DNA from: Narcine bancroftii
Taxonomy: Eukaryota
Direction of reading: 5' to 3'
Length of the DNA: 64,000 nucleotides
NCBI RefSeq assembly: GCF_036971445.1
Contig: NC_091478.1
Location: 63,054,001 to 63,118,000, forward strand
A program made the position numbers and the translations under genes. The notes under the pieces are model-generated. The model was not told the DNA's origin. It did not search any database and saw only the letters and a program-made list of their open reading frames with translations. This document shows, piece after piece, positions 14,452 through 49,800 of the stretch; positions within the stretch are counted from its first letter, which is position 1, and the number at the start of each line of letters is the position of its first letter.

Positions 14452-15319
14452 TACTTCCATTTACCCGTAATTGAAACCACACATTTGAAGAGCAAAAATA
14501 AATGAGTTTGGGCTGTCTTTGGTAACTTTAATAATTATGCAGCCCAGATCATAAAATCTATTGATATTCAATTACTGGTGCACCTACCCTGCCATTGAGC
14601 TAATTAAATGAAAGATGTTCCTGGGTATCAACCTTCATAATTGCACATCTACAACATTCAATCTACTTTGAGGCTGCCTCTGTAGTGGCCCTGAAAATTG
14701 GTAGACTGCCAGAATGATCATGTCCATTCACAAGTTGTGGGATCTGTTTGCATGCAAGTGTTTTGCTGACGAAACAGAATCACTCATCACCATCCACACC
14801 ATCAGACTAATGAGCTCCTTTACCGATATCCTGGTCCCAGTTCATGGTTTTCCAGCTGCTGTGATCACGCTTTTCAATTCTGTTAACCAAGTCATTAGCC
14901 TGCTGCCTTCCTCATTTAGATTGAAATAAAATTCCCACATCTCATTCATTCCACACCATTCAAATGCAGATTTGATGTTATTCGGTACCTGACGATTAGC
15001 CCAAAACAAATGCGACTCTGTACAGATAATTCTTCATAAAGTTATGTGAGCAGAGTTGGTCACGGCACTCTCACACCATTGATATGGAACATTGTATATC
15101 CCCTTGTGGGACTATTCAGGTAATTAACCAGATTCATTTTAGTTCTGAGGTCTTTGTTGGCTACATGGAGCAATTCACGCCAACGGAGGCAAGGCTTTCC
15201 AATTCTTCCTCTGCTAAAGCAATGACTATTTTGCTACTGCCTCAGGTATCCACGATGAGCTCGAAGACTTTATCCACTTTGCTGCCAACTTCCACTCCAA
15301 CCTTAAATTTACTTGGTCC

Positions 15320-17294
15320 GGGCACCAGGCAAGGGTGCCCCCTTAGCCCTTTATTATTTAACTTAGCTTTAGAACCTTTGGCAATTGCTATCAGAGAAGC
15401 ACCCAATATTACTGGTATTATTCGTTGCAGGGATATTCATAAAGTATCACTATATGCAGATGATTTATTGTTATATATTTCCAATCCTGAAAATTCTATT
15501 CCTGCAGTTTTATCTTTATTAGCCCAATTTAGTAATTTTTCGGGATATAAACTGAACTTAAATAAAAGTGAATTATTCCCTTTTAATGGATGGGTTCCTA
15601 TTTATGATAGTTTACCTTTTAAAATAGCTGGAGACCATTTTATATATTTAGGGATTAAGATTACTAAAAAACATAAAGATTTGTTTAGGACTAATTTTTT
15701 CCCTCTATTGGACCTGATCGGCAGTTTACTTACCAATTGGTCACCATTATCCCTATCCATGATAGGCCGAATTAATGCTATTAAGATGATGATCTTACCT
15801 AAATTTTTATATATATTTCAAGCTATACCTATTTTTGTTCCTAAATCTTTTTTTGATAAGGTCGATTCTAAATTGTCCTCGTATATCTGGCAAAACAAGA
15901 ATCCCAGATTTGGGAAAAAATATTTACAGAAATCTAAACTAGAGGGAGGGTTGGCATTACCCAACTTAAGAATTTATTACTGGGCAATTAATATTAGTTA
16001 CTTAAGATATTGGTTGAATTATTCAGAATTATCTCTAAATCCCCATTGGGTAAATTTAGAAATTAAACCGATACAAAATTTTTCAATTAGCTCTATTTTG
16101 GGAGCGGCTCTCCCTTTTACTCTTACTAAATTATATAAACAAATTGATAATCCAATGGCTAAACATACACTACATATATGGTTTCAATTCCGGAGATTTT
16201 TTTGGCCTAAGTCATTTTATCTTGGAAACTCCTATTGTACTAAATTTCCTTTTTCATCCCTCTCTAATTGATCAAGCTTATTTACTCTGGAAAGTTAAAG
16301 GTATAACATGCTTTTCGGATTTATTCTTGGATAACTTTTTCATGTCATTTGAACAATTATCCATGAAATATGATTTACCTCGATCTCATTTCTTTCGATA
16401 TTTGCAGATTAGGAGTTTCTTAGTTTCGACTTTACCCTCTTTTCCCAATCGGGAGACTCCGACTGTTTTAGAGGATATACTATATTCAAAATTCCCTCCA
16501 AAAGGTGTGATATCTAAATTATATAATATAATTACAAAAATAAATTCTGGGACTTTTGAAAAGTTTAAAAATGATTGGGAAAGAGAACTCAACCTTCATA
16601 TTTCTAATGAAAATTGGAATAAAATTCTGCGACTAGTAAACTCTTCTTCTCTATGTGCAAAACATTCACTAATACAGTTTAAAGTTGTTCATAGAGCTCA
16701 TATGTCTAAAGATAAACTCCACCGCTTTTATTCTCATATCGATCCTATATGTGATAAATGTCAATTGGAAATAGCTTCCCTTACACATATGTTTTGGTCC
16801 TGTCCCTCTTTACAGAATTATTGGAAGGAATTTTTTTCCATTATGTCTACTGTTTTGAATATTGATTTACAACCACATCCCATTACTGCAATTTTTGGAT
16901 TACCTATGATAGATTTGACTTATTTATCTCTTCCTGCGGATCGTATGATTGCTTTTCTTACACTAATGGCTAGAAGATCTATACTATTGAATTGGAAAGA
17001 GGTTAATCCTCCCACTGTTTTCCAATGTTTTTGTTAATTCAGATTTGTTTTTTCTTCTTTTTTGGTTTTTTTTTTCTCTTTTTTCATATATTGTTATTAA
17101 TTATATCTTTTTTTTTAGAGATAGTTCACACCCTAAACTGGTCTAAATTTTTTTTTTATGATATATTTTTATTCTGTAATATTATTGTTTAATATCTCTG
17201 TATTAATTCATTACTTACTATGTATTTTTTATATCTCTTTGAACTGTATGTGTTTATAAATTATAATAATAATAAAAAGATTGAAAAAGAAAAG
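15320..17294 (+). mobile_element. L1-clade LINE, 5'-truncated, with 16-bp TSD
   Basis: GTRQGCPLSPLLF, SLYADDLLLY and C-terminal CDKC...HMFWSC zinc knuckle. AATAAA and A-rich tail. TSD TAAATTTACTTGGTCC at 15304-15319 and 17295-17310. Confidence 0.95.
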
Positions 17295-17545: not shown

Positions 17546-18579
17546 TTTTATTTTTCTCAATTTTTATCTCCTTCTAGAGAGTCTAACTCTCAGTAGACAT
17601 CGTCAACAAACCCATTAACTCAGATACCTAATTTGACTGCTCCTCTTCACACCCTGTTCCCTTTAAGGGGTCTATTAATTTATCTTAATTTTTCAGTCTC
17701 CCTCACATCTGCTGCCAGGACAAAGTCTTCCATGCCAGATCATCAGAGAAGTCTTCCTTCTTCAAACAACATGGCTTTCCCCCTACCACTATCAAATTGG
17801 CCCTCACCCGCATATCCTCCATTAACTGCACATCTGCCCCAGACCTTCCTCTACAAGTGCAAAAAGGATCTCACCTACCACCCCACCAAACTCCATAATC
17901 TCTGCCACTAATCATATTATCCCACTAGCAGACACATCTTCCCTTTGTGTCCCTTTCCATTTTCCATAGGACCTCCTCATTTTGTGACTCCTTCATCACA
18001 ATTCCCCATGGAACCATTGTCTCTGACTTGCACCCCAACCTTCACCCACACCTATTCCAGGCTCTAAGTAGTCCTTCCAAATGAAGCAACACTTCACTTG
18101 AAAATCTTCGTTGGTTAACAACTGTACTTGGTGCTCCTGTGGTGCTCTGCTGTACATCATAGAGTCTGGTCACAGACTTGAATAACGCTCTGTTGAGCAC
18201 CTTGACTCTATACACTAAAATAACTGGATTTCCCATTGGCCACGCATTTCAATTCTCCATTCAATTCCCTTGCCAATACATGTTCCCACGATCTCATTCA
18301 TTGCCAGGCTGAGATCACCTGCAAATTTGAGGAAAAACAACCCAAATTCCGTCTGGGCAAATTCCAACAGGATGGCGTTAACATCGACATTTCCAGTTTC
18401 AGTTAGCACTACCCCCATCGTTCTGTTTGTCTCTATTCCTTGAGCTGCGTGTCTTTCTCTTCTACTTTCACTCTTTCTCCTTTCAAAATTTAAAAACAAC
18501 CCCCTTCCCCAATCAATACTCCCCATGGCCAATACCAGCAGGCAGACTGATAGCACCATGTTGGCTCTGAGCTTCAAAA

Positions 18580-20085
18580 GGGGAACAAATACGACATTCT
18601 ATTGCCACAATAGAGACTCCAAGTAGTTTCATTCCAGGTGCTTGGGTCCAGAATGTCTCTGAGCGGGTGCAGAACATTCTTAAGTGGGAGAGTGATCAGC
18701 CAGAGTCCGTGGTACATATTGATACAGTACAAACATCATAGGCATGAGTTGGCTAGAGGTCATGGAAAGCAGGGAAGAGGCTGAAGAGCAGTATCTCCAA
18801 GGTGGTAATCTTTGGATTATTCCCGGCGCCATAAGGTAGGGAAGGTCACAACTGGAAGATAGTGCAAAGAAACTGAAGAGGGGCAGAGTTTTAATTTCTG
18901 GGATAATTGTAAGCTTTTCTGCGGAAGTGGTGACCTTTATAAATGGGAAGGGGTTCGTCTGAAATTGAAGGGAACCAATGTCATGGCACGGGGATTTTCT
19001 AATGCTGATTGGTGGGGAGGGATGTTGGTTAAAACAGATTCACAGGGGGTTGGAACCAAACTGAAGAAATAGAGGAAAAGGTGGTCAGCACACAAGTAGC
19101 TGATAGGGGGTTTGTGTGGAAAGAAAGGCAGATAGGGAAAAATCGGAGGCATGGGGAATGTGTTACAATGCACAGTGACACAGTGTTAAGTGAAGCAAAT
19201 AAAGAACAAAAGGCTTGTATTTAAATGCATACAACATAAGAAATAAAGTGGACAACCTTGTCGTAAAGTAACAGATTGGCAGGTATGATGTAGTGGCAAC
19301 CACAGAGTCATGGCTAAAGGATGGATGTCCTTGAGAACTGAATGTCTGAGGATGAGCAGGTAATCCGGGGTGCTGTCGCTGTGCTGGCAAGGAACAACAC
19401 TGAATCCTTAAAAGAGCTGACAGGGCTCAGAAGATATAGAATCAATGTGGGTTCAGTTAAGAAATGGCAAGGGTGAAGACACTGTAAACAGTTATATACA
19501 CACTTCCAAACGTCAGCCGCGATATGGAAAAAGCAGATGGAAAAGACGTGTCAGAAAGACCATGTTATGGTAGTCATAGGGGATTAAATATGCAAGTAGA
19601 TTGAGAAAACCAGGTTGGCACTGGATCTCAAGAGAGAGATTTCGTAGAAAGCCGATGAGATTACTTTTTCGAGCAGCTTGTTGATGAGACCACGAGGGGA
19701 TTGGCTGTATTGTAGTGGGTCTGGAGCATGAACCCGAGGTGATTCGATTGCTTTGAGTGAAGGAATCAATAAGGGCAGTTATCATAATATATACGATTGA
19801 GTTCAATTTGAGATTTACAAGGAGAAAACAAAGGCAGATGTGCAGTAAAGGGAATTACACTGACATGAAAGAGGAACTGGCCAAAGTAGATTGGAAGGGG
19901 GCACTAGTAGAGAAGACAGCAGAGCAGAAATGGATGGAGTTTCTGCAAGAAATGGGGAAGTATAAATACAAACCCCCAAAAAAGGGGAATATTCGAAAAG
20001 AAAAATGTCACAATTATGGCTGACTCGGAAAGTCAAAGCCAACGTGAAAGCAAAAAAGAGCAACAGAAAATAGTGGGAAGACTAT
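18580..20085 (+). mobile_element. Old CR1 LINE fragment (ORF1 esterase to endonuclease)
   Basis: Degenerate but colinear with 45500-47100 (YLNAYNIRNKVD, YDVVATTESWL, GNYTDMKEELAKVDW). Confidence 0.75.
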
Positions 20086-20385: not shown

Positions 20386-21652
20386 CTTTGGCTTGGCTTC
20401 GCGGACGAAGATTTATGGAGGGGGTAAAAAGTCCACGTCAGCTGCAGGCTCGTTTGTGGCTGACCAGTCCGATGCGGGACAGGCAGACACGATTGCAGCG
20501 GTTGCAAGGGAAAATTGGTTGGTTGGGGTTGGGTGTTGGGTTTTTCCTCCTTTGCCTTTTGTCAGTGAGGTGGGCTCTGCGGTCTTCTTCAAAGGAGGCT
20601 GTTGCCCGCCAAACTGTGAGGCGCCAAGATGCACGGTTTGAGGCGTTATCAGCCCACTGGCGGTGGTCAATGTGGCAGGCACCAAGAGATTTCTTTAGGC
20701 AGTCCTTGTACCTTTTCTTTGGTGCACCTCTGTCACGGTGGCCAGTGGAGAGCTCGCCATATAATACGATCTTGGGAAGGCGATGGTCCTCCATTCTGGA
20801 GACGTGACCCATCCAGCGCAGCTGGATCTTCAGCAGCGTGGACTCGATGCTGTCGACCTCTGCCATCTCGAGTACCTCGACGTTAGGGGTGTGAGCGCTC
20901 CAATGGATGTTGAGGATGGAGCGGAGACAACGCTGGTGGAAGCGTTCTAGGAGCCGTAGGTGGTGCCGGTAGAGGACCCATGATTCGGAGCCGAACAGGA
21001 GTGTGGGTATGACAACGGCTCTGTATACGCTTATCTTTGTGAGGTTTTTCAGTTGGTTGTTTTTCCAGACTCTTTTGTGTAGTCTTCCAAAGGCGCTATT
21101 TGCCTTGGCGAGTCTGTTGTCTATCTCATTGTCGATCCTTGCATCTGATGAAATGGTGCAGCCGAGATAGGTAAACTGGTTGACCGTTTTGAGTTTTGTG
21201 TGCCCGATGGAGATGTGGGGGGGCTGGTAGTCATGGTGGGGAGCTGGCTGATGGAGGACCTCAGTTTTCTTCAGGCTGACTTCCAGGCCAAACATTTTGG
21301 CAGTTTCCGCAAAGCAGGACGTCAAGCGCTGAAGAGCTGGCTCTGAATGGGCAACTAAAGCGGCATCATCTGCAAAGAGTAGTTCACGGACAAGTTTCTC
21401 TTGTGTCTTGGTGTGAGCTTGCAGGCGCCTCAGATTGAAGAGACTGCCATCCGTGCGGTACCGGATGTAAACAGCGTCTTCATTGTTGGGGACTTTCATG
21501 GCTTGGTTCAGCATAATGCTGAAGAAGATTGAAAAGAGGGTTGGTGCGAGAACACAGCCTTGCTTCACGCCATTGTTAATGGAGAAGGGTTCAGAGATTA
21601 TGATTATCCAACTGCACGAAAACCAACAAGGTCGGGTCAGATACAGCAATGA
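20386..21652 (-). mobile_element. RTE-clade LINE, 5'-truncated with terminal 5' inversion
   Basis: Open RT C-terminal frame (ORF 20438-21712). Segment 21600-21652 is in the opposite orientation. Flanked by TA repeats. Confidence 0.95.
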
Positions 21653-21653
21653 A

Positions 21654-21654
<1 letters not shown>

Positions 21655-21692
<38 letters not shown>
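21655..21692. repeat. (TA)n microsatellite
   Basis: Read directly from sequence. Confidence 0.95.
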
Positions 21693-21693
<1 letters not shown>

Positions 21694-22429
21694 CCCTTGT
21701 GTCAGTAGCCATGTTAGTCTGATGAAAATAAAGGATGAGAAAGCATCAGGTCTCCTTTCATACAGACGTCTGTCTCGTTTTAAATCATACATTTAAGAAG
21801 GGCCCAGACCCGAAACTTCGTCATATATAGTTACCCCCTGTTGGACGCGGCAGGTCGTGTTAAGCTACAGCATTTCTCCATCTCATAGTATCCAGCTTAA
21901 TCTCAACCTTCAAACAATGTGCTGGACGGGAGTTCAGAGACAGTGATGGACCCGGCGATGTGTGCTACCTTCTGTTTTCCGGGCTTCTCAAATTATCATT
22001 CCAGGGCGATACGCAACCAGTCGATATTATTTGAGCAGAACATGTTCGACAAAAGATTCCGAACCTCCTCGCACTGCTTAGAAAGTAGGCACCTTGGAAA
22101 GCAACGCAGGTGGGTGGAGTCGGTATGGGTGGACGCGTACGAGTTGGGTGAAGGGCAGGCACTCAATTTGGGGCTGAAAGGCAGCGGTGAGGATGGCTCG
22201 CGCGCGGACATCGAAACCCGCGAAAGGGAAGCAGGGAGAAGTCGATCCCATCACGGCCACCAACCCCTCCCCCCCCCCCCCCTCACCCTGGGAGGAAGGA
22301 TGCTGGACAAGTGACGTTGAAAGGAGGGCGCAGAGAGCGCTGTAGTCGGTCTGTGAACCCTGGACCCACCTCCCTCGCATTCCCTGCGCGCAGGCCAATG
22401 AATTTTTATCATTGCTTTGTTCGGTAACT

Positions 22430-23862: not shown

Positions 23863-23902
23863 ATGTCAGGGACTGCGATTGTTCTCCTTCTGCTTCTCCG
23901 AG
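23863..23902 (+). CDS. Exon 1, signal peptide (MSGTAIVLLLLLR)
   Basis: ATG, hydrophobic run, phase-1 donor G|GTAATA, then a 116-nt intron. Typical Ig leader exon. Confidence 0.8.
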
Positions 23903-26366
23903 GTAATATTTAACCAGTACCATTTTGTTCCTTGTTCTACTTATTTAGTTCTCTCTCTTTATCTCCCATCTCGATGCCGGCCTCACCGATTTAATTGCGC
24001 CATGTTACATTTTCTCAGCAGTTGCAGATCAGCGAGGTTTTCATGTAAATCAATTACCCAAAGAAACCAGTATACCAGTCGGGGGAAATGTTACCTTTTA
24101 TTGTGTGTTCCCCATCATCCGCGACAAGTCCAGTGTGAAGGTCTACTGGTGGAAGGAGGGTGAGAATGCATACCAACACAGCGATGTCGCCAATGGAAAA
24201 CGATATGGTCTCCGAGGTAGAGCAAGTTGGTACTTTGAGTTGTGCAAAGCAACTGTCCAAGATTCTGGAGTATATCGCTGTTCCGTCATCGGTCCGGAAA
24301 TGGTTGCAATCAATGGAAGTGGATCACGTCTAATTATTCACGGTAAATCATATTAACGGGAAAGGCAAACAGCGAATAACTGTCTGAACAATAAGAAACG
24401 GAAAGGCTGGTAGATAGACCATGATTTGTCGATACCCCTCTACCCACTCAATGAGGATGAGGAAGGCAGAGGTTCTGTCGCCCGTCACCCAACCCGTACA
24501 GTTCGCGGTTATGTTCATGCCCGCCCGAAGAGGCTCGCTGCAACGTGACACAAAGCTTTATGGATTCTCATTTCTATTGTCTAGTATATTCACCATCCTC
24601 ACCCAGGCCCCCATCCTATAACTATTTTGTCTGATGTGGATCAAACAACCTGCAAATAAAAGCATTCCTCAGCCATTCTATATTCAGAAGATCATCGCTC
24701 CACCATTGCCTGAGTACCTTGCGGGAACAATATCACGTTATAAGTAGCAAAAGGGAACCATTGAAAATTGTGGAAGTAGAAGATAACCACCCATTCACTC
24801 CCCCCGCCCCATACACTCAATCATTATCTCTCTGTNNNNNNNNNNNNNNNNNNNNNNNNNNNNNNNNNNNNNNNNNNNNNNNNNNNNNNNNNNNNNNNNN
24901 NNNNNNNNNNNNNNNNNNNNNNNNNNNNNNNNNNNNNNNNNNNNNNNNNNNNNNNNNNNNNNNNNNNNNNNNNNNNNNNNNNNTGTAGTATCCAGCGATT
25001 TAACCTACAGCAACGGCGAGGATCAATATGCCTGCAAGGTATATCACCTCTCTCTCCAGACTCCAGCCGTTGCCAGGTATTCTGTTGCGAAACAAGGTAT
25101 GTCGTTTAACAGTCCAGTGAGTCGTGATTTGTTGTAAATGCCTTGATGCATTGTATAAATTCTTGCAGTTAATAATTCCGAAATTAAATCATTCAAATTC
25201 CATGGGGAAATATAGGATGGAGCATTGATTTAATTTCCAATTTGTATCAAAACCCCGTGCGTCTGAGGCATGGCCACTCAAATGCCGTTGGCAATCATTT
25301 TTTCAAAAAATTGCTGCGCTACAAAAGCATAGAGATATTAATCGTTCATGTTTCATACCCACCTCATTTTCATTAGGTTTCTTTTGTTTTCAATTTTAAG
25401 TGTGTCAGAGTTTTGCTCTACCACCATCTCTAAACTTCTTGTCCTTCTTGGAACTCTTAAATCTGCAGTTTGCTTTGCAAATTAATTTGGACTACATTCA
25501 ATCAATGTAGAAACTTCGAGTATTAATTATGTGCACATCATTTGTTCTGTATTTATTGCTATTTTCATGTTCACTCGTGTACAGCGTAATTCCACCCAGT
25601 TGTGTTTCAGCCCTATTCTGACCGCTCCACTCACAAATGGACAAAGAATGTGTTTAACATGAAAACCTAATGTTACTGAGTCCAGAGGACCCCAAAAACT
25701 AGCAGCAATAAATATGCACCACAACACAGTGTTACTTCAACAAAAGTAGTTTTTACTTGTATTTGAACAATAAAACAGAATTGAACTTTAACTTATTACT
25801 TAAATTACCTAATAATTAATACCCCCCCTCCCCACCCCAATCCCTCTAATACTAAGCGCAGGTGTGTGTAATGTATATTTTAGATTAGAAAGGTTCTTTG
25901 GATCACAGTCCAATCTCACTGGTTGCAGGCAATTCTTGTACTGTGCACAGATGTTTGCATTAGCAAAGTTCACCAGTCTTTGGTGCTTAGCAGGCAAATG
26001 GTTACCACTCAAGAGGGTTCTTGCTGGTTTTCAGTGATAGATTCCTTTTCTAGACATCCACAACTGATTCCTACTCAATCAGTCTTGCTGACGAACCTTG
26101 CCCCCTTTTGGGTTCTCCAGGTGATCCTCTTTCTTTCAGACCGCCAATCTCCGCCTCTGACCAGACAGCCTTCCAAAGTTTGCCAGCTGCTGCCCCTGGA
26201 ACGGATTACTGTCTCCTCTCTCTCTGTTTCACATCATCGCTCTCTGAGAGCAACACTCTTCTCTGCCTGCAAAGATATCATAGTCTCCCAGGCAAGCTGC
26301 TAACGATACTTTATTGCCTCCTGCAAAGAGCATTCTGAAATAGTCCTGCAAATAATCTATGTTTTA

Positions 26367-26405
<39 letters not shown>

Positions 26406-29400
26406 TGTGTGCAAGCTGCTCTAAGAATTCCTCCCAAACCACCTGTGAATACTCTGTCACACTAACAAGTATAATAAATATTCCTTATAACTTTGCAGAT
26501 TCTCGCAATACACTCGCAAACTACCTGGTTCCTAGTGGCGTGGTGGTTGGATTACTGATTTTAGTGCTAATGATTGTTGTCGGGGTACGGTTGGGACGAC
26601 AGGAACTTGAAGGTAAGATCTGGATTGAACGCTCGATGTTACTGAACACGGAAGAATTGTAAAATTCCTTTAATCTGTTGACAGCTTTGACAAACCGCCG
26701 GTCATCCTGAACGAGGAGTTGCCTCTTCTCGGTGACTGAACGTCCGTTCTCCTTTTCCCAATTCAGATTTTGCCTATTAAGAAGCAATAATGATTGCCAT
26801 GTTCACCCTAGAACAACTGGAAGAAACTGCAGGGAACAGGATGAACTACAAATCAAAGCCACATAATCTGGGAACTGAGAAGTATATGATGAATTCATTT
26901 ACAGTTCGAGCCAAGGCAGAAAATCACCTCCATTCCATGTATGTTACACGTGATGATATGCGAGAGCGACTCGTCTATGCGCTCAGAACAGGCGTTATGA
27001 CCCTGTTTCTCCTATAGTTTTGCACTTCACATCAAACAGGTTTACACTTCATGAGCAGTTAATCCGTCAGGCAATGTGAAAAATATTCGACATTTGTGGC
27101 ATTCACACCGGGATCAAGTTTTACAGAAAATATGGTTATAAAGCCGAACTCTGCAGATTATACTTGTGCACTTATGTTGTGAAAGTCAGACTCCCTGACT
27201 ACTTTCATGAAGCGTCTGCAAATTTTAAGTAAAGACTCTCAACCAATCTCCTGCTGCTGAACATAACCCAACTCCATGCTCCAACACGGGGCAGAGGAAT
27301 ATTCTCTATCTCATTCTCCATCAAAGGAAACTCATCTAAGTGTATCCTAATCAGCTCTGCTTCAAATGAAGCTCCCGACCTGAAGAAGAGAATGTTCAAA
27401 TTTCAATTCTGGCTCTGGTATAATATACTTTTCGATATCAGTGAGTTCTGCTCTAACCCGCACTTCAGATGTATGGTCGATTTTTAAAAATTAACTTGCA
27501 AACACTTAACAGATAATATGAATGCCCCAATAGGCTAAACAAACCAAAAGCCGTTTAAAACAATATCGTCACCAAAATCTAATTCAAACTTAAGCAACAT
27601 CAATATGTAGAGCTCGTGGTTCGTTTACCTATCAAAAGTATCTCCAATGGAGCAGTCTATTCCGAAAGGCGCCCTTGAAAGTAATTATCTGGAGCGTAAG
27701 GAAAATAACGTATGAATATTTTCAAAGCGTCCATAAAAACAGCTAACGTTGTGGCAGCTTCATTGCGATTCTGGCATTGAACGATCGAAACATTGTAAAG
27801 AATCATCCAAGAGTCTATGGTGTAAGGAAAAAAAGCTGGTTATCAGTCGGATACAGAAACAAAGGAAATAGTGGAAGCAGAAGGCAATCGTCCATGACCC
27901 ACAAGCTCACACACACAAACTGCCTGTGCAAAGCCTAAATCCACATTCGCTGCACCATTACCTCAGAAACATACCTGCGGAGCAATGATTCAATTAGATT
28001 TTCGACTTCAATCCAATTAAAAAAAATGTCATTTGATGGCATTGGTCGCCTTGTAAATGTTTTCCTTCATTTCGGAATTAAACAAAATACCACTGATAAA
28101 ATGAATTTGGGTTCGATTTGAGGATAGAAAAGATGTCACAATGCGAAATACGAAATATTTCCAGCATTTGTCCATTTCCCGAAATATATTTTAGAAACAT
28201 AGAAGATAGGAGCAGGAGTAGGTCATTCGACCCTTCGAGCCTGCTCCGCCATTCAACGAGATCATGGCTGATCTTAAAGTTCAGTACCCCGTCCACGCCT
28301 TCTCTCCGTAACCTTTAATACCCTTATACTGAAGAAATATATCTAATTCCCTCTTAAATATATTTAATGAACCTGCCTCTACTGCCCTCTGCGCAATGAA
28401 TTCCACAGATTCACCACCCTCTGGGTCAAGAAATTCCTCCTCATCTCAATCCTAAATGGTTTGCTTATTATCCTCAAACCATGGCCCGGGATCTGGATTT
28501 TCCCATCATTGGAAACATCCCATCTGCATCCATTCTGTCCAATCCTGCCAGAATTTTATATGTCTCTATGAGATCCCCTCTCAATCTTCTAAACTCCAGC
28601 GAGTACAATCCCAATTTGCGCAATCTTTCCTCCTAAGTCATTCCTGCCATTCCAGGTATCAGCCTGGTGAATCGCCTTTGCACTCCCTCCATTGCAAGAA
28701 CATCCTTCCTTAGATCAGGTGACCAAAACTGCACACAATACTCCAGGTGGGGTCTCACCAAGGCCCTGTACAGCTGCAGTAAGGTATCCTTGTTCCTATA
28801 CTCAAACCCTCTTGATATGAAGGCCAACATACCATTTGCCTTTTTAACTGCCTGCTGTACCTGCATGCTCACCTTCAGAGACTGGTGTAGAAGTACCCCT
28901 AGGTCTCTCTGCACTTCCCCATCTCTTAATCTATTGCCATTCAAATAGTAATCTGCCCTCTGGTTTGTATTACCAAAGTGGATAACCTCACATTTATCCA
29001 CATTGTAGTGCATTTGCCATGGATCTGCCCAGTCCCTCAATTTATCCAAATCACACTGGAGCTTCCTGACCCCCCTCTTCCGTGCACATAACCCCTCCTA
29101 GCTTAGTGTCATCTGCAAATTTTGAGATATCTGCACTGGAAAGATGTTAAATGTTATAATGACATTAAAATTTTGCCTCTTTCAAGGTGAAGAGGAATGT
29201 GGGATGGAACCAAATGGCCACCAGGATCAGGTATGTCCCTTCATTTATTCATACTGGTCAATGCTGGAAATGCCAAGAAATAGACTGAATTAGAGCGACT
29301 ATATTCTGCTCACATTAGAAACTTTACGTATGTTTACCAGAAGTATTAATCGTAATCAGAATTTATTGTCATGATCAAGTCATGAAATTCGGTGTTTTGC

Positions 29401-30624
29401 AGCAGCATCTTAATGAGAACATGGATATAACCATCTTACGACATTACTATAAAAGTAATAGAAAGTAATTAAAAACAAAAGTGCAAGGTAGGATTTTTGG
29501 ATCATTAAACATTCAGGAATCTGATGGCAGCGGGGATCAAGCTGTCTTGTGCCGTTGAGAGCTCGACTTTAGGCTCCCGTACTTTTCGCAGATGGTAGTA
29601 GAGTGAATCTGGAATGGGCTGTGTGCTGGGTGGTGGGGGGTTCTTAAGGATTGAGGCAGTGTTTTTTTTTTAAAGACACCACCTCATGTAGATGTCCGCG
29701 ATGGTCCCAGACAGAGTTAACAACCCTCTGCAGTTTATTCTTGTCCTGAGAGTTAGTGTCTCCATACCAGGCAGTGATGCAACCAGCCAGAATGCTCTCC
29801 ACGGTCCACTTGTGACATGCTCCTCAGACACCTCACAAAGTATAGCCGCTGGCGAACCTTCTTGGTGATTAGATCAACGTGGAGGCTCCAGGACAGATCC
29901 TTGGAGATGTTAACACCCAGGAATTTGAAGTTCTTGATCCGCTCCACAAATCCGGTCACAGAGGACTTTTCAAATGGTTATCACAATGCCCTTGGTTTCA
30001 GCGATTTCAAGTGTTAAATGTCTGATTAACAGATCAAGGTTCAGTAGCAGTGGTTAAATGTTGGAGATCGTCGCTCTTTGAAACTCTTCCAAAGTCAAAA
30101 CTGATAGGTTTAAATAAAATATGATGTTCATCGTGCCATAATATTTGCAACTGTATCCATATATTTATACATGAACTCGTGTCCTTGATCTCAAGCCCAG
30201 AGCAACCTATTTAAGGATTGACACGGACACTTAGCCGAATAATATTTTTGTCGAACTTTTCAGAGAGAAGAGAACAACATGGTACATTATGTTGCAATAC
30301 ATTTCGACACGTCCAGGAAGGCCACAAAACAAAAACGTCTTGACGCAAGGCATGCTTTTGATCAGGTGAGCGTAAATAACGGTGTAGAGCGTTCATTAAT
30401 TGGATGCTATTTCTCAAGCATACGATTTGAGCAGCACATCCCAAAACAAATGAAAAAGCCAAATAGCAGTATTTTCTCAATTGCCTTTACAGAAAATGCA
30501 AGGGGAACCAAGAGGAACCAGGACGGAGTATAGGATAAACTGCAAAGAGAGCACAGAATATGCGGAGGTGAAAACAAAAAAAGACCGCGGAGCAACAGAG
30601 GCGCTTTATTCAACAATAAGATAA
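23863..30624 (+). CDS. Spliced IgSF receptor gene: leader - VJ-type V - C1 - TM - ITIM/ITSM tail (SIRP/NKp30/antigen-receptor-like). Exons 23863-23902, 24019-24342, [start uncertain, ~24750-24838]-25096, 26499-26612, 29187-29230, 30264-30365, 30493-30624
   Basis: All visible introns are GT..AG with compatible phases (1,1,1,1,0,0). The spliced reading is open from ATG 23863 to TAA 30622-30624 wherever sequence is available. Roughly 340-370 aa depending on true gap size. Confidence 0.88.
24019..24342 (+). CDS. Exon 2, Ig V-set domain with J-like G strand
   Basis: Acceptor ttttctcag|. Translation (A)VADQRGFHVNQLPKETSIPVGGNVTFYCVFPIIRDKSSVKVYWWKEGENAYQHSDVANGKRYGLRGRASWYFELCKATVQDSGVYRCSVIGPEMVAINGSGSRLIIH has the B-strand Cys, C-strand Trp, DSGxYxC and GxGSxL. 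Donor G|GTAAAT, phase 1-1. Confidence 0.93.
24836..24983. other. Assembly gap (148 N) within the C1 exon region
   Basis: N run. Confidence 0.99.
24984..25096 (+). CDS. Exon 3, visible 3' part: Ig C1-set domain C-terminus
   Basis: After the gap it reads VVSSDLTYSNGEDQYACKVYHLSLQTPAVARYSVAKQ, containing the C1 signature YxCxVxHxSL. Phase-1 donor G|GTATGT. The 5' part is hidden by the N gap. Confidence 0.88.
25671..26461. mobile_element. Solo LTR (791 bp) in intron 3 of the IgSF gene
   Basis: Termini TGTTAC...GTCACA. 4-bp TSD CTAA at 25667-25670 and 26462-26465. Contains a (TG)n tract at about 26368-26411. Confidence 0.82.
26499..26612 (+). CDS. Exon 4, transmembrane
   Basis: Acceptor ctttgcag|. 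(D)SRNTLANYLVPSGVVVGLLILVLMIVVGVRLGRQELE has a ~22-aa uncharged hydrophobic helix followed by basic residues. Donor G|GTAAGA. Confidence 0.9.
28192..29130 (-). mobile_element. Young CR1 LINE, 5'-truncated, in intron 4
   Basis: ORF 28633-29049 (LVRPHLEYCVQFWSP). Near-identical reverse complement of about 48082-49020. Confidence 0.95.
29187..29230 (+). CDS. Exon 5, cytoplasmic ((G)EEECGMEPNGHQDQ)
   Basis: ttttgcctctttcaag| ... CAG|GTATGT. The 44-nt length converts phase 1 to phase 0, exactly as needed to join the TM exon to exon 6. Confidence 0.8.
29350..29950 (-). mobile_element. Rex1/Babar LINE 3' fragment in intron 5
   Basis: VERIKNFKFLGVNISKDLSWSLHVDLITKKVRQRLYFVRCL. Confidence 0.8.
30264..30365 (+). 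CDS. Exon 6, cytoplasmic, ITIM VHYVAI
   Basis: acttttcag| REENNMVHYVAIHFDTSRKATKQKRLDARHAFDQ CAG|GTGAGC. 102 nt, phase 0-0. Confidence 0.85.
30493..30624 (+). CDS. Exon 7, terminal, ITSM TEYAEV and ALYSTI
   Basis: ttgcctttacag| KMQGEPRGTRTEYRINCKESTEYAEVKTKKDRGATEALYSTIR*. Confidence 0.85.
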   Translation, partial: KMQGEPRGTRTEYRINCKESTEYAEVKTKKDRGATEALYSTIR

Positions 30625-37757: not shown

Positions 37758-40700
37758 TTGCTTGGCCACGGCACACGAACCATGGGTGTAAAGGGTGGGG
37801 CCAGTACTGCGCGCACTGCACTCCACCTAAAAGCTCCTTTGCGCAGGCCCGAGGATAGGTCCACGTCCTCCCCCTCCACGTCCTCCCCCTCCACGTCCTC
37901 CCCCTCCACATCCTCCCCCTCCATGTCCTCCCCCTCAAAAGATGCTCACAAACTCAAGCTAGCATGCTGGAACATCAGAACCATGCTAGACAAGGCTGAC
38001 AGCCACCGACCTGAACGTCGGTCTGCCCTCATTGCACATGAACTCCTCAGACTTGACATCGACATAGCCGCTCTCAGTGAAGTCCGCCTGGCAGACGTAG
38101 GCAGCCTCCAAGAACGCGGCGCGGGCTACACACTCTACTGGTCTGGCAAGCCTTCGGATGAACGACGCCTATCTGGTGTAGGCTTCATGGTCAAGAGCTT
38201 CATTGCCTCCAAACTCGAAAACCTTCCGACAGGCCTCTTGGACCGAATCATGTCCATGCGACTCCCACTTCAAAACAAGCGTCACATCACCCTCATCAGT
38301 GTCTATGCTCCAACCCTCCAGGCGGAACCAGCAGAAAAGGACAAGTTCTACACCGACCTGCGCAACCTCATCCAACGTACCCCTACAGCCGACAAGGTTG
38401 TCATCCTGGGCGACTTCAACGCTCGTGTCGGCAAAGACTCAGAAACCTGGCCAGGAATCCTGGGCAAGCATGGCGTCGGCAAGTGCAACGACAATGGGCG
38501 CCTCCTGTTGGAGCTCTGCGCAGAACAGCGACTTGTCATTACAAACACCCTTTTTCAGCAGAGGGACAGCCTTAAGACCACCTGGATGCATCCCCGATCC
38601 AAACACTGGCACCTCCTGGACTACATCCTGGTGCGAGAAAGTGACAAACAAGATGTGCTCCACACCAGGGTCATGCCTAGCGCGGAATGCCACACTGACC
38701 ACCGGCTGGTTCGCTGCAAGCTCAACCTTCACTTCAAGCCAAAGCCCAGGAACATTAAAGCCCCCAGAAAGAGGTTCAATGTTGGAAACCTGCAGTCAGA
38801 CGAAGCGAGAGGAAACTTCCAGGCAAACCTCAAAGCAAAGCTCGACGTTGCAACCCGCCTCACGGACCCGTCCCCTGAAACCCTCTGGGATCAGTTGAAG
38901 ACTACCATACTGCAATCCACTGAAGAGGTACTGGGCTTCTCCTCCAGGAAAAACAAGGACTGGTTTGACGAAAACTGCCAGGAAATCCAGGAGCTGCTGG
39001 CAAAGAAGCGAGCTGCCCACCAGGCTCACCTTACAAAGCCGTCCTGTCCAGAGAAGAAACAAGCCTTCCGTCGCGCATGCAGCCATCTTCAGCGCAAACT
39101 CCGGGAGATCCAAAATGAGTGGTGGACTAGCCTCGCCAAACGAACACAGCTCAGCGCGGACATTGGCGACTTTAGGGGTTTCTACGAGGCTCTAAAGGCT
39201 GTGTACGGCCCCTCACCCCAAGTCCAAAGCCCGCTGCGCAGCTCAGACGGCAAAGTCCTCCTCAGCGACAAGATCTCCATCCTCAACCGATGGTCAGAAC
39301 ACTTCCAATCTCTTTTCAGTGCCAACCGCTCAGTCCAAGATTCCGCCCTGCTCCAGCTCCCTCAACAGCCCCTAAGGCTAGAGCTGGATGAGGTTCCCAC
39401 CCTGGATGAGACATATAAGGCAATCGAACAACTGAAAAGTGGCAAAGCAGCAGGTATGGATGGAATCCCCCCAGAAGTCTGGAAGGCTGGCGGCAAAACT
39501 CTGCATGCCAAACTGCATGAGTTTTTCAAGCTTTGTTGGGACCAAGGTAAACTGCCTCAGGATCTTCGTGATGCCACCATCATCACCCTGTACAAAAACA
39601 AAGGCGAGAAATCAGACTGCTCAAACTACAGGGGAATCACGTTGCTCTCCATTGCAGGCAAAATCTTCGCTAGGATTCTACTAACTAGAATAATACCTAG
39701 TGTCGCCGAGAATATTCTCCCAGAATCACAGTGCGGCTTTCGCGCAAACAGAGGAACCACTGACATGGTCTTTGCCCTCAGACAGCTCCAAGAAAAGTGC
39801 AGAGAACAAAACAAAGGACTCTACATCACCTTTGTTGACCTCACCAAAGCCTTCGACACCGTGAGCAGGAAAGGGCTTTGGCAAATACTAGAGCGCATCG
39901 GATGTCCCCCAAAGTTCCTCAACATGATTATCCAACTGCACGAAAACCAACAAGGTCGGGTCAGATACAGCAATGAGCTCTCTGAACCCTTCTCCATTAA
40001 CAATGGCGTGAAGCAAGGCTGTGTTCTCGCACCAACCCTCTTTTCAATCTTCTTCAGCATGATGCTGAAGCAAGCCATGAAAGACCCCAACAATGAAGAC
40101 GCTGTTTACATCCGGTACCGCATGGATGGCAGTCTCTTCAATCTGAGGCGCCTGCAAGCTCACACCAAGACACAAGAGAAACTTGTCCGTGAACTACTCT
40201 TTGCAGATGATGCCGCTCTAGTTGCCCATTCAGAGCCAGCTCTTCAGCGCTTGACGTCCTGCTTTGCGGAAACTGCCAAAATGTTTGGCCTGGAAGTCAG
40301 CCTGAAGAAAACTGAGGTCCTCCATCAGCCAGCTCCCCACCATGACTACCAGCCCCCCCACATCTCCATCGGGCACACAAAACTCAAAACGGTCAACCAG
40401 TTTACCTATCTCGGCTGCACCATTTCATCAGATGCAAGGATCGACAATGAGATAGACAACAGACTCGCCAAGGCAAATAGCGCCTTTGGAAGACTACACA
40501 AAAGAGTCTGGAAAAACAACTAACTGAAAAACCTCACAAAGATAAGCGTATACAGAGCTGTTGTCATACCCACACTCCTGTTCGGCTCCGAATCATGGGT
40601 CCTCTACCGGCACCACCTACTGCTCCTAGAACGCTTCCACCAGCGTTGTCTCCGCTCCATCCTCAACATCCATTGGAGCGCTTACACCCCTAACGTCGAA

Positions 40701-43838: not shown

Positions 43839-46800
43839 CTTTTTTTTTAAACTTTATTTATTTGTTCAAAAAACAAATACTATATGACATATACAACAAT
43901 TAACCATAAACATGAACATTATTTTTTATATATAGAAAAAAAGAAAAAAAAAGGAAAAAGAACCTCCCCCTTCAGCCAACTCTCCTAAGGAGAGCCATAA
44001 AGAAAGAAAAAAGAAAAAATATTAAAAAAAAAAATACATATTAAGATCTAATCAATGTAAATAGAAATGTAAATATTCTGAATATAACAACCACATTAAT
44101 AAAAAATATAATTATCACACAAAACATATGTAATTTTTCTATTATTAAACAATATCTCATCTCATTATGCCATCTATTAATATCAATCATATTTGTATCT
44201 TTCCACATACTAGCAATATATTTTTTCACTACACATAAAGCTACATATACACAAGCAAGCTGAAACTTATCTAATCCCAAGCCTTTAAGAGGTTGCAAAC
44301 TACCCAATAAAAATACTGTCAGATCTAAAAGTATTTTAATCTTATACAGGTATTCTAAAAACAATTGAATTTTCTTCCAAAAAGATTGTATATGTACACA
44401 TGACCAAACAGTATGAAAAAAAGTTCCAACTGTATTACCACATCTAAAACACAAATCTGATCATGAAAACCATATTTTTTAAAATTCTTCAGGTGTTAAG
44501 TATAATTGATGTAAAAAATTTTCATTAATCATTGCATAACATGCATTTATCAATCTAGTTACACTAGCATCAGAGGGTGAGTAGAATAAATAGCTGGACT
44601 TACCAGGGCTTGGGCTCAGAAAGGTCAGACTCGGGGTCGGAGGAGACAGTGAGTCAGTGCCTGGTGTCGGGTGAGAGGAGGAGGAGCCAAGAGACAGCAT
44701 CAGAGGGTGAGTAGATTAAATAGCTGGACTTACTAATTTGGCTAGTCCAATCGACATGTAAATTCGATCTGGGAATCGAAGGAGGAGAAGCTCGGAGAGA
44801 GTGACGTGGAGGTAAACAGTTAAATACAAGGACTTACTGGGGCTTGGGCCTACTCAAATCGGGCTGGGAGTCAGAGGAGCAGGAGCTTGGAGAGAGTGAC
44901 TGGGTTAATTGGTCAAGGTTAATTGGTCAAGGGGCCAGCAAAAGGAGTAAAAGGGGAGGGAGCGGCCAGCGAGGAGCGGCGCACTGAGTGAGTGGGGCAC
45001 TGAAGGAGTGGGACTTCCAGCCTTTGGCTCAACAGGCTGAGGCAAAAGCAGGCGAGGAGAAAGGTAAGTGGCATTATTTTAGCTCAGCCATGCCTATGGG
45101 GTTAGTGCTTTGTACTGGATGTCAGATGTGGGAACCATGGGTGAGTCCCACCCTCCCAAATAGCCACATCTGCGTCAGGTGCACCGAGATGCAGTTCCTT
45201 AAGGACCGAGTTGGGAAACTGGAGCTGCAACTTGAGGACCTACGGCTGGTAAGGGAGAGTGAGGAGTTGATAGATTCAACTTTCAGGGACATAGTTACCC
45301 CAAGACCAGATGTGTCAGTTAAGTGAGTAACTGTCAGGGGAGGGAAGAAAAATACCAGGAAAATGGAGAGCACACCTGTGAATATCCCTCTCAGTTACAG
45401 GTATGTTTTGTTGGATGCTGTTGAGGGAGATGACCTGACAGAAGCTGGCAGCAGTGACCAGGTCGCTGGCACTGAGCCTGGCATGGTGGACAAAAAGGTA
45501 AAGAGGAATACAGTGGTCATTGGGGACTCCATTGTCAGAAATACAGACAGGAGATTCTGTGAGCCAGATAGGTATGCCCGCATGGTGTGCTGCCTCTCTG
45601 GTGCAAGGGTGCGGGATATCTCAAATCGGGTCCAGGGTATTCTAAAAGTGGAAGGCGAACAGCCTGATGTCTTGGTACATGTGGGTACCAATGACATAGA
45701 TAAAAAGAAGGAGGAAGTACTGAAAAAGGATTACAGAGAACTAGGACAAAAACTAAGAAATAGGACAGCCAGGGTGGTGATCTCTGGTTTGCTACCTGTG
45801 GCAAGTGCAACTGAGGACAAAAATGGAAGGTTAAGAAAAATGAATGTGTGGCTGAGGGGCTGGAGTAAAGGACAGGGTTTTGGCTTCTTGGATCATTGCG
45901 ATCTCTTTTGTGGAAGGCATGACCTCTACAAGAAGGATGGGTTACACCTAAACCCAAAAGGGGTCAATATATTGGCAGCTAGGTTTGGTACAGCCGTCGG
46001 GTGCGGTTTAAACTAATTTGGCAGTGGGGGTGGGAACCTGTATGATAGGGCAAAGGACAGAAAAGATAAAACAGGAAAAGCTAGGTTAGGCAGCGAAAGT
46101 AAAAAATCAGAAAGAGCAAGGAGGGTGAAAAAAGCAAATCTGAAGGCTTTATATCTTAATGCAAGAAGCATTCAGAACAAGGTAGATGAATTAGCTGTGG
46201 AAATTGAGATAAACAAATATGATTTGATTGGGATTACAGAAACATGGCTGCAGGGTGGGCAAGCCTGGGAACTTAACATCCCGGGGTACACGATATTTAG
46301 GAGGGATCGGCAAGAAAGAAAAGGGGGTGGGGTAGTATTGATGGTGAGAGAAGGGACCGACACGATTGACAGAAAGGATATCAACTCGGAAGATGCGGAA
46401 TCTATATGGGTAGAACTGAGGAATACCAAGGGGCGGAAAACGTTAGTGGGGGTGGTATATAGGCCTCCAAATAGTAGTGTAGAGGTGAGGGAAGGCATTA
46501 AAAGAGAAATTAGAAAACCGTGCAATAAGGGAACAGCTGTCATCATGGGAGACTTTAATTTGCATATAGATTGGACTAGTCAAATTAGTAAAAATACTGA
46601 GGAGGAGGAATTCCTTGAATGTTTACGGGACGGTTATCTAGACCAATATGTCGAGGAACCAACTCGGGAGCATGCCATTTTAGATTGGGTATTATGCAAT
46701 GATAAGGGGCTAATCAACAATCTTGTTGTATGAGGCCCTTTGGGTAGGAGCGATCACAATATGATTGAATTCTCACTCGACATGGAGAGTGATGAAATTA

Positions 46801-49800
46801 AAACCGAGACTAAGGTCCTGAATTTAAATAAAGGGAATTATGATGGTATGAGACGGGAGTTGAGTAAGATTGATTGGGTGGTGTTAATGGGGGAGTTGAC
46901 TGTGGATAGACAATGGAAAGCTTTCACAGATCTAATGGAGAAATTACAAAAACCGTTTATACCGGTTTGGCATAAAAATAAACCAAAAAAGGTGACTCAA
47001 CCGTGGATAACAAGGGAAATTAGAGACAGCATTAGGTCCAAAGAGAGAGCATATCAACTGGCCAGAAAAAGTACCACAACCGAAGACTGGGAGCAGTTCA
47101 AGATGCACCAAAGGAGGACAAAGGGATTAATCAAGAGAGCAAAAATAAATTACGAAAGTAAGCTTGCGGCAAATATAAAAACCGACTGCAAAAGCTTTTA
47201 TAAATATGTCAAGAGGAAAAGATTGGTGAAATCCAGAGTAGGTCCCTTGCAGTCGGAATCAGGGGAATATATAATGGGGAATAAGGAAATGGCAGACCAA
47301 TTAAATTCTTACTTTAGTTCTGTTTTTACAAGAGAGGATACAAATAACCTCCCAAGGATGTTGGGAAACATAGAGACTAATGCAAGGGAGGAACTGAAAG
47401 AAATCAGTATCTCTAAGGACATGGTCTTGGGGAAATTGATGGGATTGAAGGCAGATAAATCCCAAGGGCCTGATAATCTACATCCTAGGGTACTTAAGGA
47501 AGTGGCCAATCAGATAGCAGATGCTTTAAGAATTATTTTCCAGAACTCGATAGACTCAGGATCAGTACCCATGGATTGAAGGGTAGCTAATGTTACCCCA
47601 CTATTTAAAAAGGGGGGTAGAGAAAAAGCGGGGAATTATAGGCCGGTGAGCCTTACATCAGTAGTGGGCAAAATGATGGAATCCATTATTAAGGATGTAA
47701 TAGCGGAGCATATGACTAGCAGAGAAGGGATCGGACGGAGTCAACATGGATTTACAAAAGGTAAATCGTGCTTGACAAATCTATTGGAATTCTTTGAGAT
47801 GGTGACAGGTAAAAGAGATGGGGGAGAGCCCCTGGACTTCCAAAAGGCCTTCGATAAGGTCCCGCATAAATGACTGGCTTACAAAATCAAGGCTCATGGG
47901 AATGGGGGCAAAGTATTGATGTGGATTGAGAACTGGCTGGCAGGTAGAAGACAGAGAGTTGGGATAAATGGCTCGTTTTCTGAGTGGCAGGCGGTGACCA
48001 GTGGGGTGCCACAGGGATCTGTACTGGGACCCCAGCTGTTCACAATTTACATTAATGATCTGGATGAGGGGATTGGATGTAATATCTCCAAATTTGCAGA
48101 TGACACTAAGCTAGGAGGGGTTGTGTGCACGGAAGAGGGAGTCAGGAAGCTCCAGTGTGATTTGGATAAATTGAGGGACTGAGCAGATACATGGCAAATG
48201 CACTACAATATGGATAAATGTGAGGTTATCCACTTTGGTAATACAAACCGGAGGGCAGATTACTATTTGAATGGCAATAAATTAAGAGATGGGGAAGTGC
48301 AGAGAGACCTAGGGGTACTTGTACACCAGTCTCTGAAGGCGAGCATGCAGGTACAGCAGGCGGTTAAAAAGGCAAATGGTATGTTGGCCTTCATATCAAG
48401 AGGGTTTGAGTATAGGAACAAGAATACCTTACTGCAGTTGTACAGGGCCTTGGTGAGACTACACCTGGAGTATTGTGTGTAGTTTTGGTCACCTGATCTA
48501 AGGAAGGATGTTCTTGCAATGGAGGGAGTGCAGAGGCAATTCACCAGCCTGATACTTGGAATGACAGGAATGACTTATGAGGAAAGATTGCGCAAATTGG
48601 GAGTGTATTCGCTGGAGTTTAGAAGATTGAGAGGGGATCTCATAGAGACATATAAAATTCTGGCAGGACTGAACAGAATGGATGCAGATGGGATGTTTCC
48701 AATGATGGGGAAATCCAGAACCCGGGGCCATGGTTTGAGGATAATAGGTAAACCATTTAGGACAGAAATGAGGAGGAATTTCCTTACCCAGAGGGTGGTG
48801 AATCTGTGGAATTCATTGCCACAGAGGGCAGTAGAGGCAGGTTCATTAAATATATTTAATAGGGAATTAGATATATTTCTTCAGTATAAGGGTATTAAAG
48901 GTTACGGAGAGAAGGCGGGGACGGGGTACTGAACTTTAAGATCAGCCATGATCTCATTGAATGGCGGAGCAGGCTCGAAGGGTCGAATGACCTACTCCTG
49001 CTCCTATCTTCTATGTTTCTATAACAAATATCTACCCAATTATCCTCGGAAAAAAATAAAACCAATATCCGCTTCCCATTTACTTTTAGATCTATCCCAA
49101 TCCATTTTATCCACACAATCCTGTAATATTTGATACATAGATGAAATATAACCCTTCTCTGGTACCTTCATAAGAAAAGTCTCAAATTTAGTCATTTCAG
49201 GTAAAATTATATCTCTACCAAAAATATTTTTACCAAAGATTGAATTTGATAATAGAGAAACAAAGAGTTCTTATCAATATCAAAACTGTCCCTCATCTGA
49301 TTAAAAGATAAAAATTTACCCTCTTTAAAACAATCTCCCAAATTTTTCACACCTTCAAATCTCCAATGCAATAAACCGATTATGCATTGAAAAAGAAATA
49401 AGTTGATTATTATACAACAGAGTCAAAGCCGATAATTTACCCCTAAAGCCTATCATTTTATTTTTCTTTATCCAAAACTTCATTAAATGTTTTAGTATAG
49501 GCACATTATGTTGCCGTAACAAATTTATATTCCATCTAAACAAAAATTGATGTATTTCAAATTCAGAAATATTTGCCATCTCAATTTTAGCCCAACAAGG
49601 AGGCCATACTAAATCCATCAATGAACTAATAAATTTAAGTTGGGCTGCTTCATAATAATTTTGAAAATGTGGTAAATGTAATCCCCCTAACTCATATTTC
49701 CAATTTAATTTATTCAAAGCTACTCTCGAAAATTTACCTCTCCATAAAAACTCCCTAACAATTTTATTCAAGTCTCGAAAAAAAAATTATTAAGTAAATA

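Follow-up and report, generated by a model that had tools for sequence, protein, structure and literature searches.

Receptors with a germline-joined V domain

In several groups of immunoglobulin (Ig)-superfamily receptors the V domain does not rearrange and its J-like strand is already joined to it in the germline. In the SIRP family (human structures 2wng and 4i2x), a V domain of this kind is followed directly by C1-set domains in a V-C1-C1 ectodomain, and the tail of SIRP-alpha carries paired tyrosines of the immunoreceptor tyrosine-based inhibition motif (ITIM) type. UrIg and UrIg2 are antigen-receptor-like, non-rearranging shark genes with three to eleven C domains and Fc-like dimers, for which no inhibitory motifs have been described (PMC12227049). 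NKp30 (NCR3) and PD-1 also encode their V(J) domain in a single exon, without any C1 exon; NKp30 signals through a charged transmembrane (TM) residue, and PD-1 pairs an ITIM with an immunoreceptor tyrosine-based switch motif (ITSM) (PMC11599192). Bony vertebrates have the PRARP genes, which are non-rearranging V-C1 genes (Fu et al. 2019, as cited in PMC10751288). A one-exon VJ plus C1 is the layout discussed for the antigen-receptor ancestor that preceded RAG (PMC10751288, PMC12227049), and non-rearranging V(J)-C1 genes bear on the origin of antibodies and T-cell receptors (TCRs). Here we describe a gene with this layout in the lesser electric ray, Narcine bancroftii, which lies at 23863-30624 of a 64,000-nucleotide stretch of contig NC_091478.1, hereafter the window.

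The locus is a real, transcribed N. bancroftii gene, and in our assessment it quite probably represents an expressed non-rearranging Ig-superfamily receptor of a multigene family of cartilaginous fish. Its product would begin with a leader and a V domain that includes its own J-like strand, followed by a single C1-set domain, a TM helix free of charged residues and an inhibitory tail with an ITIM and an ITSM. The gene shares with SIRP-alpha the non-rearranging V with its J-like strand, the tail with paired ITIM-type tyrosines and, in its proposed layout, a C1-set domain placed directly after V, but the SIRP ectodomain has two C1 domains and the chondrichthyan family has one, in a large tandem family without one-to-one orthology. 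With UrIg and UrIg2, which are confined to cartilaginous fish, it has in common the one-exon VJ, the split leader and the C1-type constant domain, whereas those genes have three to eleven C domains where the window gene has one C1 and an ITIM/ITSM tail. A second isoform, which skips the C1 exon, has the V-stalk-TM-tail layout of NKp30 and PD-1; the charged TM residue of NKp30 is not present in the window gene.

Structure of the gene and its V domain

The gene is made up of seven coding pieces on the + strand, given here with the assembly gap that interrupts them:

23863-23902, + strand: exon 1, start codon and leader (MSGTAIVLLLLLR), 40 nt, GT donor, leaving in phase 1
24019-24342, + strand: exon 2, complete V domain with a germline J-like G strand (NGSGSRLIIH), 324 nt, phase 1-1
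24836-24983: assembly gap of 148 N, a length that is an estimate only, concealing the acceptor and the first part of the C1 exon
24984-25096, + strand: visible 3' end of the C1-set exon, 113 nt, 37 codons read in the frame from 24985 (VVSSDLTYSNGEDQYACKVYHLSLQTPAVARYSVAKQ), leaving in phase 1
26499-26612, + strand: stalk and TM exon (DSRNTLANYLVPSGVVVGLLILVLMIVVGVRLGRQELE), phase 1-1, membrane span without a charged residue
29187-29230, + strand: cytoplasmic exon 1 (cy1; G-EEECGMEPNGHQDQ), phase 1-0, residues 158-173 of the RefSeq protein
30264-30365, + strand: cytoplasmic exon 2 (cy2) with the ITIM VHYVAI, phase 0-0, a 100% match to RefSeq residues 173-207
30493-30624, + strand: last coding exon (cy3) with TEYRIN, the ITSM TEYAEV, the terminal ALYSTI and the stop codon, phase 0 to stop

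The reading frame is open in each visible exon; acceptors, where visible, are AG and donors GT, and the phases are compatible throughout. The exons were searched singly. The best database match of the V exon was XP_069755609 (isoform X2, 218 residues), accompanied by XP_069755607 (isoform X1, 219 residues), and both are labelled N. bancroftii "uncharacterized protein". The leader exon is identical to residues 1-13 of XP_069755609. At the V exon we observed a NAGNAG tandem acceptor (cag|cag, 24019/24022), which explains why the two RefSeq isoforms differ by one alanine at the leader/V boundary.

The V exon runs from the remainder of the split leader through YRCSVIGPEMVAINGSGSRLIIH and ends in a germline-joined J-like strand of the form G-x-G-S-x-L-x-I (here G-S-G-S-R-L-I-I). 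The preliminary description, made from the DNA letters, had proposed that a single exon encodes the complete V domain with its J-like strand, and this held: 24019-24342 is one uninterrupted exon with neither an intron nor a recombination signal sequence (RSS) between V and the J-like strand. A rearranging antigen receptor (Ig light chain or TCR) was therefore rejected, since V and J-like strand are not separated by an RSS in the germline. Pfam assigned the exon to V-set (E 3e-7) and the family V profile matched it at E 6e-38. An AlphaFold model made with the family alignment had a V-type sandwich fold with a mean predicted local distance difference test score (pLDDT) of 85, for which the nearest folds were VNAR, TCR V-beta, V-lambda and the PD-L1 V domain (TM-score about 0.7). 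By sequence, the nearest solved proteins of the V exon were shark IgNAR V (5e-5) and PD-L1 V (6e-5). The domain is short, with 58 residues between its two cysteines.

Transcripts with and without the C1 exon

Next, we mapped four public runs of one study (X1 to X4, 112-330 million letters each) on positions 24000-29999 of the window, to which the RNA results refer. The V exon was present in the four runs, two of which contained 97% of its sampled words. The runs cover exons and transposon pieces but no unique intron sequence, with depth zero at 24400-24799, and thus behave as RNA. Contigs from X1, X2 and X4 span 24017-24341, that is, the V exon, and one contig (record 1 of X1) reaches 142 nt further 5' of it.

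The splice joints define two forms. The visible C1 fragment is joined to the TM exon (25096 to 26499, GT..AG, in frame) in X1, X2 and X3, and the V exon is joined directly to the TM exon (24342 to 26499, GT..AG), skipping C1, in X1, X2 and X4. The joint from the TM exon to cy1 (26612 to 29187) occurs in all four runs, with 44-47 nt on the cy1 side. Two longer contigs extend these forms, one from X4 (699 nt) carrying V-TM and 453 nt beyond, into the tail, and one from X3 (564 nt) carrying C1-TM and 336 nt beyond. Two in-frame transcript forms therefore coexist, one with the C1 exon and one in which V passes directly to TM. The preliminary description had expected the junctions of a single V-C1-TM-tail transcript; its C1-to-TM and TM-to-cy1 joints were confirmed, while in place of the V-to-C1 joint the V-to-TM joint was seen. 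Compared with the window, the RNA contigs show a single-letter difference in V and another in the C1 piece.

Some of the intron sequence gave a different picture. Transposon pieces at 25600-26200 and 28000-29999 reach an RNA-contig depth of up to about 190,000 and show numerous variant letters and unusual joints. These high-depth pieces are transcripts of repeat families elsewhere in the genome and not of the receptor gene.

The C1 exon and the assembly gap

The visible 37 codons of the C1 exon match the C1 profile of the relatives at positions 73-101 of 104 (E 6e-6), and their best matches among solved structures (PDB) are the F-G strands of beta-2-microglobulin and MHC-I alpha-3, both C1-set. 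The fragment retains the F-G signature Y-x-C-x-V-x-H ... P (YACKVYHLSLQTP). Pfam gave no match on this 37-residue piece or on the tail exons, for which family profiles built from the relatives were needed. Given the profile and PDB matches, these codons encode the end of a C1 domain whose start must lie in the gap, and the acceptor and roughly the first 50-60 codons are placed within 24836-24983. The earlier claim of a C1-set exon thus stood for its visible part, with the acceptor and first part hidden by the gap.

RNA supports this placement. A 326-nt contig of run X2 (record 10) holds 31 nt of the TM exon, a 111-nt C1 fragment and 184 letters further left, and to the left of the gap RNA depth is zero at 24400-24799, so the C1 exon continues inside the gap. 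The 184 nt exceed the 148 N and equal what a 99-codon exon, as in the Hypanus relative, would need (297 - 113). Alternatively, they may comprise 154 nt of exon, for a C1 exon of 267 nt, and a 30-nt overhang into the V exon, as is usual for such contigs, and both readings preserve phase 1-1. The frame is compatible on either side of the gap, with phase 1 out of V and phase 1 out of the C1 piece, and a V-to-C1 junction in one transcript is predicted.

Searches with tblastn and with the family profile showed no C1-like coding sequence left of the gap, a result that covers the 493 bases separating it from the V exon. Neither a second C1-like exon nor a paralogue was found in the 64 kb, where the family profiles match only V, the C1 fragment, TM, cy2 and cy3. 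Weak tblastn matches at 18504-18605 and 55987-56073 were rejected since they were lost in the profile scan.

A family of V-C1 receptors in cartilaginous fish

An exhaustive HMMER search with the V exon returned 122 proteins, 44 of them at E<1e-10. The relatives with a single V that were looked up are all chondrichthyan and have a V-set and a C1-set domain, with V identities of 36-54%. Proteins combining V-set, C1-set, TM and ITIM/ITSM tails were found in about 20 shark, ray and chimaera species, among them:

Rays and sawfish: Hypanus, Hemitrygon, Mobula, Pristis
Sharks: Scyliorhinus, Mustelus, Heterodontus, Heptranchias, Stegostoma, Chiloscyllium, Hemiscyllium, Carcharodon, Cetorhinus, Rhincodon
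Chimaera: Callorhinchus

The ten relatives scanned with Pfam all have one V-set and one C1-set domain, the combination that the preliminary description had anticipated from a homology search. It had also foreseen homologues under generic automatic names, and the relatives are indeed called SIRP-alpha-like, SIRP-beta-1-like, SIRP-gamma-like, tapasin-related protein-like, Ig lambda-1 light chain-like, NCR3LG1-like, CD276 homolog, MHC class II beta-like and TCR beta-like. Representative members are Hypanus sabinus XP_059849417 ("tapasin-related protein-like"), the Mobula hypostoma protein P0146 ("SIRP-alpha-like"), Mustelus asterias XP_078066559 and a Callorhinchus milii cluster (XP_007902823-30). 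The window gene shares with them the V signatures WWK.GEN..., QDSG.Y.C and G-x-G-S-x-L-x-V and the order of TM, ITIM and ITSM. It departs from them in its shorter tail, from which the second and third tyrosine motifs are gone, in the absence of the cysteine that many members carry at the start of the TM, in a C1 exon mostly hidden by the gap and in the C1-less isoform seen in RNA.

In individual species several paralogues share a single chromosome-size contig, and in Callorhinchus an 18-Mb scaffold carries at least a dozen. The paralogue count proposed earlier for the ray contig gave none further within the window, and such tandem sets of several genes per contig were found in the relatives' species. 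In a tree of V domains, the window gene groups with Hypanus and Mobula proteins (97/90) within a subclade of sharks and rays (92/96), and the other subfamilies, which bring the total to at least three old ones, likewise mix sharks and rays. By this tree the family had diversified before the shark-ray split, since sharks and rays are mixed within subfamilies.

Outside the chondrichthyans, the word-filtered search matched only multi-V proteins of reptiles, which lack C1, and a single Coregonus protein, which in profile-profile alignment looks like an Ig chain fragment; all were rejected as orthologues. The protein searches returned no tetrapod or bony-fish SIRP, in a word-filtered search that may hide some. 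Judged by its sequence, the gene is an additional member of an already databased, unnamed and inconsistently labelled chondrichthyan family. Among the papers that could be searched, none names or studies a shark or ray family of inhibitory V-C1 receptors, and the earlier idea of a poorly characterised cartilaginous-fish family is borne out by these relatives, with the exception of its natural killer (NK)-type label, for which no support emerged. The locus adds a transcribed batoid member with C1-containing and C1-less transcripts shown side by side, and corrects a public gene model that misses C1; the overall picture is unchanged, as relatives from many species are already in RefSeq.

A putative inhibitory tail and its possible length variants

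Tails in most relatives carry in order a first ITIM, TVYAQ, LTYAAL (or VTYAAL) and TEYAE(I/L) (also TEYAQL), and some are short. The tail motifs of the family resemble those of SIRP-alpha. In the window gene, VHYVAI in cy2 matches the ITIM consensus (I/V/L/S)xYxx(I/V/L) and TEYAEV in cy3 matches the ITSM consensus TxYxx(V/I), while the second and third tyrosine motifs of the family have decayed to HAFDQ and TEYRIN. The family tail profile matched the TM exon at E 7e-5, cy2 at E 6e-5 (aligned to the consensus vtYaaL...tvYaq) and cy3 at profile positions 108-128 (nteYAelq) with E 0.03-0.04. These results agree with the earlier description of a TM exon (26499-26612) followed by a tyrosine-motif tail, here three exons with VHYVAI, TEYRIN, TEYAEV and ALYSTI.

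An uncharged TM helix together with an ITIM and an ITSM that align with motifs conserved across the family suggests an inhibitory receptor, which would recruit SH2-domain phosphatases after tyrosine phosphorylation, like SIRP-alpha, PD-1 and Siglecs. In the mechanism that we propose, the V domain is predicted to bind a ligand on a cell surface or a pathogen, Src-family kinases would phosphorylate the tail tyrosines, and phosphatases of the SHP-1/SHP-2 type would dock there and damp activation of the receptor-bearing cell, as for SIRP-alpha. Alternative splicing would yield V-C1-TM-tail and a shorter V-TM-tail product, in which skipping of C1 would bring V nearer to the membrane and leave the tail untouched. 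Phosphatase recruitment, ligand binding and the cell type of expression are all predictions made from sequence. As for the SHP-recruiting tail of the preliminary description, its ITIM and ITSM align with the family, the RefSeq version has no ITSM, and recruitment itself is predicted.

Short tails also occur among the relatives: P0003, P0004, P0015 and P0147 have very short ones, and P0003 and P0004 carry an arginine near the start of the TM helix. By analogy with SIRP-beta and SIRP-alpha, this hints that short-tailed members may be activating partners of the inhibitory ones.

The public gene model differs from the window in two respects besides isoform choice. Mapped on the window, the RefSeq protein consists of the leader, V, TM, cy1, cy2 and the start of cy3, without C1, because the assembly gap made it impossible to model C1. 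It carries one substitution (I106V) beside the end of the V exon, and in the last exon its KMQGEP is followed by AQSIG and a stop, as against RGTRTEYRINCKESTEYAEVKTKKDRGATEALYSTIR and a stop in the window. The last exon contains an imperfect tandem repeat of 10 nt (GGAACCAAGA / GGAACCAGGA) at about 30505-30524, within the stretch 30505-30530. The RefSeq tail would fit a sequence 10 bases shorter at this repeat with two further substitutions, and the difference could be a tail-length polymorphism or an assembly difference. As the window differs from both the RefSeq protein and the RNA contigs, it is probably another haplotype or assembly version than the annotated one. The window frame of the last exon fits the family tail profile through the ITSM (nteYAelq against STEYAEVK), and on this ground the long tail looks to be the ancestral form, with the RefSeq version as an apparent truncation.

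Relation to SIRP and other candidate families

Judged through the full-length relative P0146, the nearest CHARACTERISED family by sequence would be SIRP, not TCR or NKp30, whereas for the V exon alone IgNAR V and PD-L1 V lead. For this Mobula protein, the nearest full-length relative and a co-orthologue of the window gene, human SIRP-alpha was the top solved match (9.5e-19, over the end of V and all of C1), followed by SIRP-gamma (3.2e-16), UrIg2 (4e-16), antibody chains (about 1e-13 to 1e-12) and TAPBPR (1e-11). A search with the family profile placed an IgA heavy chain first and UrIg2 second (5e-33), with SIRP-alpha at 1.6e-29 aligned across V and C1 in one stretch; chains with several C domains top this ranking because their scores add up over those domains. 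No specific sequence match to NKp30 or PD-1 beyond the Ig fold was found in the PDB sequence search and the fold comparison. Strict membership of SIRP was rejected in view of the single C1 instead of two, the many paralogues and the missing one-to-one orthology, and membership of UrIg/UrIg2 in view of the three or more C domains there against a single one in the window gene and its relatives.

Alternative explanations

Several observations weigh against the reading of the locus as a V-C1 receptor with an inhibitory tail. The transcript that skips C1 was seen in three runs and is the sole form in RefSeq, the V-to-C1 joint is absent from the RNA records shown, and about two-thirds of the C1 exon lies unread in the gap, where a defect is possible. 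Moreover, the RefSeq protein takes only 11 residues from the last exon and ends past the first inhibitory motif but short of the ITSM, and the expressed allele may be the short-tail one. The ITIM and the ITSM are short motifs whose function is predicted only, and for the V exon alone SIRP V falls outside the top 60 PDB matches, which are led by IgNAR V and PD-L1 V.

The transcript evidence could be taken to mean that the working product is a single-V inhibitory receptor (V-TM-tail, PD-1- or NKp30-like) and that in the ray C1 is either in decay or an optional cassette exon. The GT..AG joint from V to TM in X1, X2 and X4, the 699-nt contig of X4 that runs from V through TM into the tail, the V-TM structure of both RefSeq isoforms and the fact that the skip preserves the frame (phase 1 to phase 1) all fit this idea. 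However, the C1-to-TM joints in X1, X2 and X3 indicate that the C1 exon is used too, its visible part is open with the conserved YxCxVxH...P core retained, a C1-set domain occurs in every relative tested, and RefSeq was unable to model C1 across the gap; we therefore consider this explanation fairly unlikely. That the window copy is a non-functional allele or a pseudogene appears highly improbable. In favour of this view are a C1 exon that is for the most part unread, the differences of the window from the RefSeq protein and the RNA contigs, and the decay of two tail tyrosine motifs of the family. Against it, each visible exon is open and has its splice sites intact, transcription and splicing of the gene are seen in RNA, and the frame of the last exon follows the profile of the family across the ITSM and on to the terminal tyrosine.

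The remaining alternatives concern kinship. A plain ray orthologue of tetrapod SIRP-alpha would agree with SIRP-alpha and SIRP-gamma as top solved matches of P0146 and with the high rank of both in the family-profile search, as well as with the resemblance in tail motifs and many RefSeq names. It is nevertheless quite unlikely, with one C1 instead of two, many paralogues per species without a one-to-one relation, no tetrapod or bony-fish SIRP in the word-filtered protein searches and no SIRP among the top 60 PDB matches of the V exon. We judge it very unlikely that the gene is a relic of the pre-RAG precursor lineage of antigen receptors, kin of UrIg/UrIg2 or PRARP and not of SIRP. Its one-exon VJ plus C1 layout (PMC10751288, PMC12227049), the rank of UrIg2 as second in the family-profile search (5e-33) and third for P0146, and a V fold nearest to VNAR, TCR V-beta and V-lambda speak for such a relic, yet the UrIg2 scores stem from its several C1 domains, UrIg and UrIg2 possess at least three C domains and no inhibitory tail has been described for them (PMC12227049), and SIRP-alpha, whose V is also of the VJ type, scores higher for P0146. 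An expressed V-C1 receptor of the chondrichthyan family thus stays our preferred reading. A broader proposal, speculative and in our opinion rather unlikely, is that the family is both a cartilaginous-fish sister of the tetrapod SIRPs and a little-changed descendant of the VJ-C1 ancestor, in which exon skipping (V-C1 against a PD-1-like V-only form) and a 10-base polymorphism (ITIM plus ITSM against ITIM only) would tune one gene.

Surroundings of the gene

The intron before the TM exon contains a (GT)n microsatellite at 26369-26410, and a second assembly gap of 128 N lies at 58019-58146. The rest of the window is debris of long interspersed nuclear elements (LINEs) and holds no other gene. 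One copy at 37758-40523 (+ strand) is still open-looking, with an open reading frame (ORF) of 921 amino acids that matches Exo_endo_phos (1e-12) and RVT_1 (4e-35), and further reverse transcriptase fragments lie at 5066-6067 (- strand), 15084-17037 (+ strand) and 20438-21712 (- strand). An ORF at 45363-46016 (+ strand) carries a GDSL-esterase / OSK-like domain (3e-13) of the kind present in the first ORF of certain LINE families, and is adjoined by ORFs without assignment at 46125-47579.

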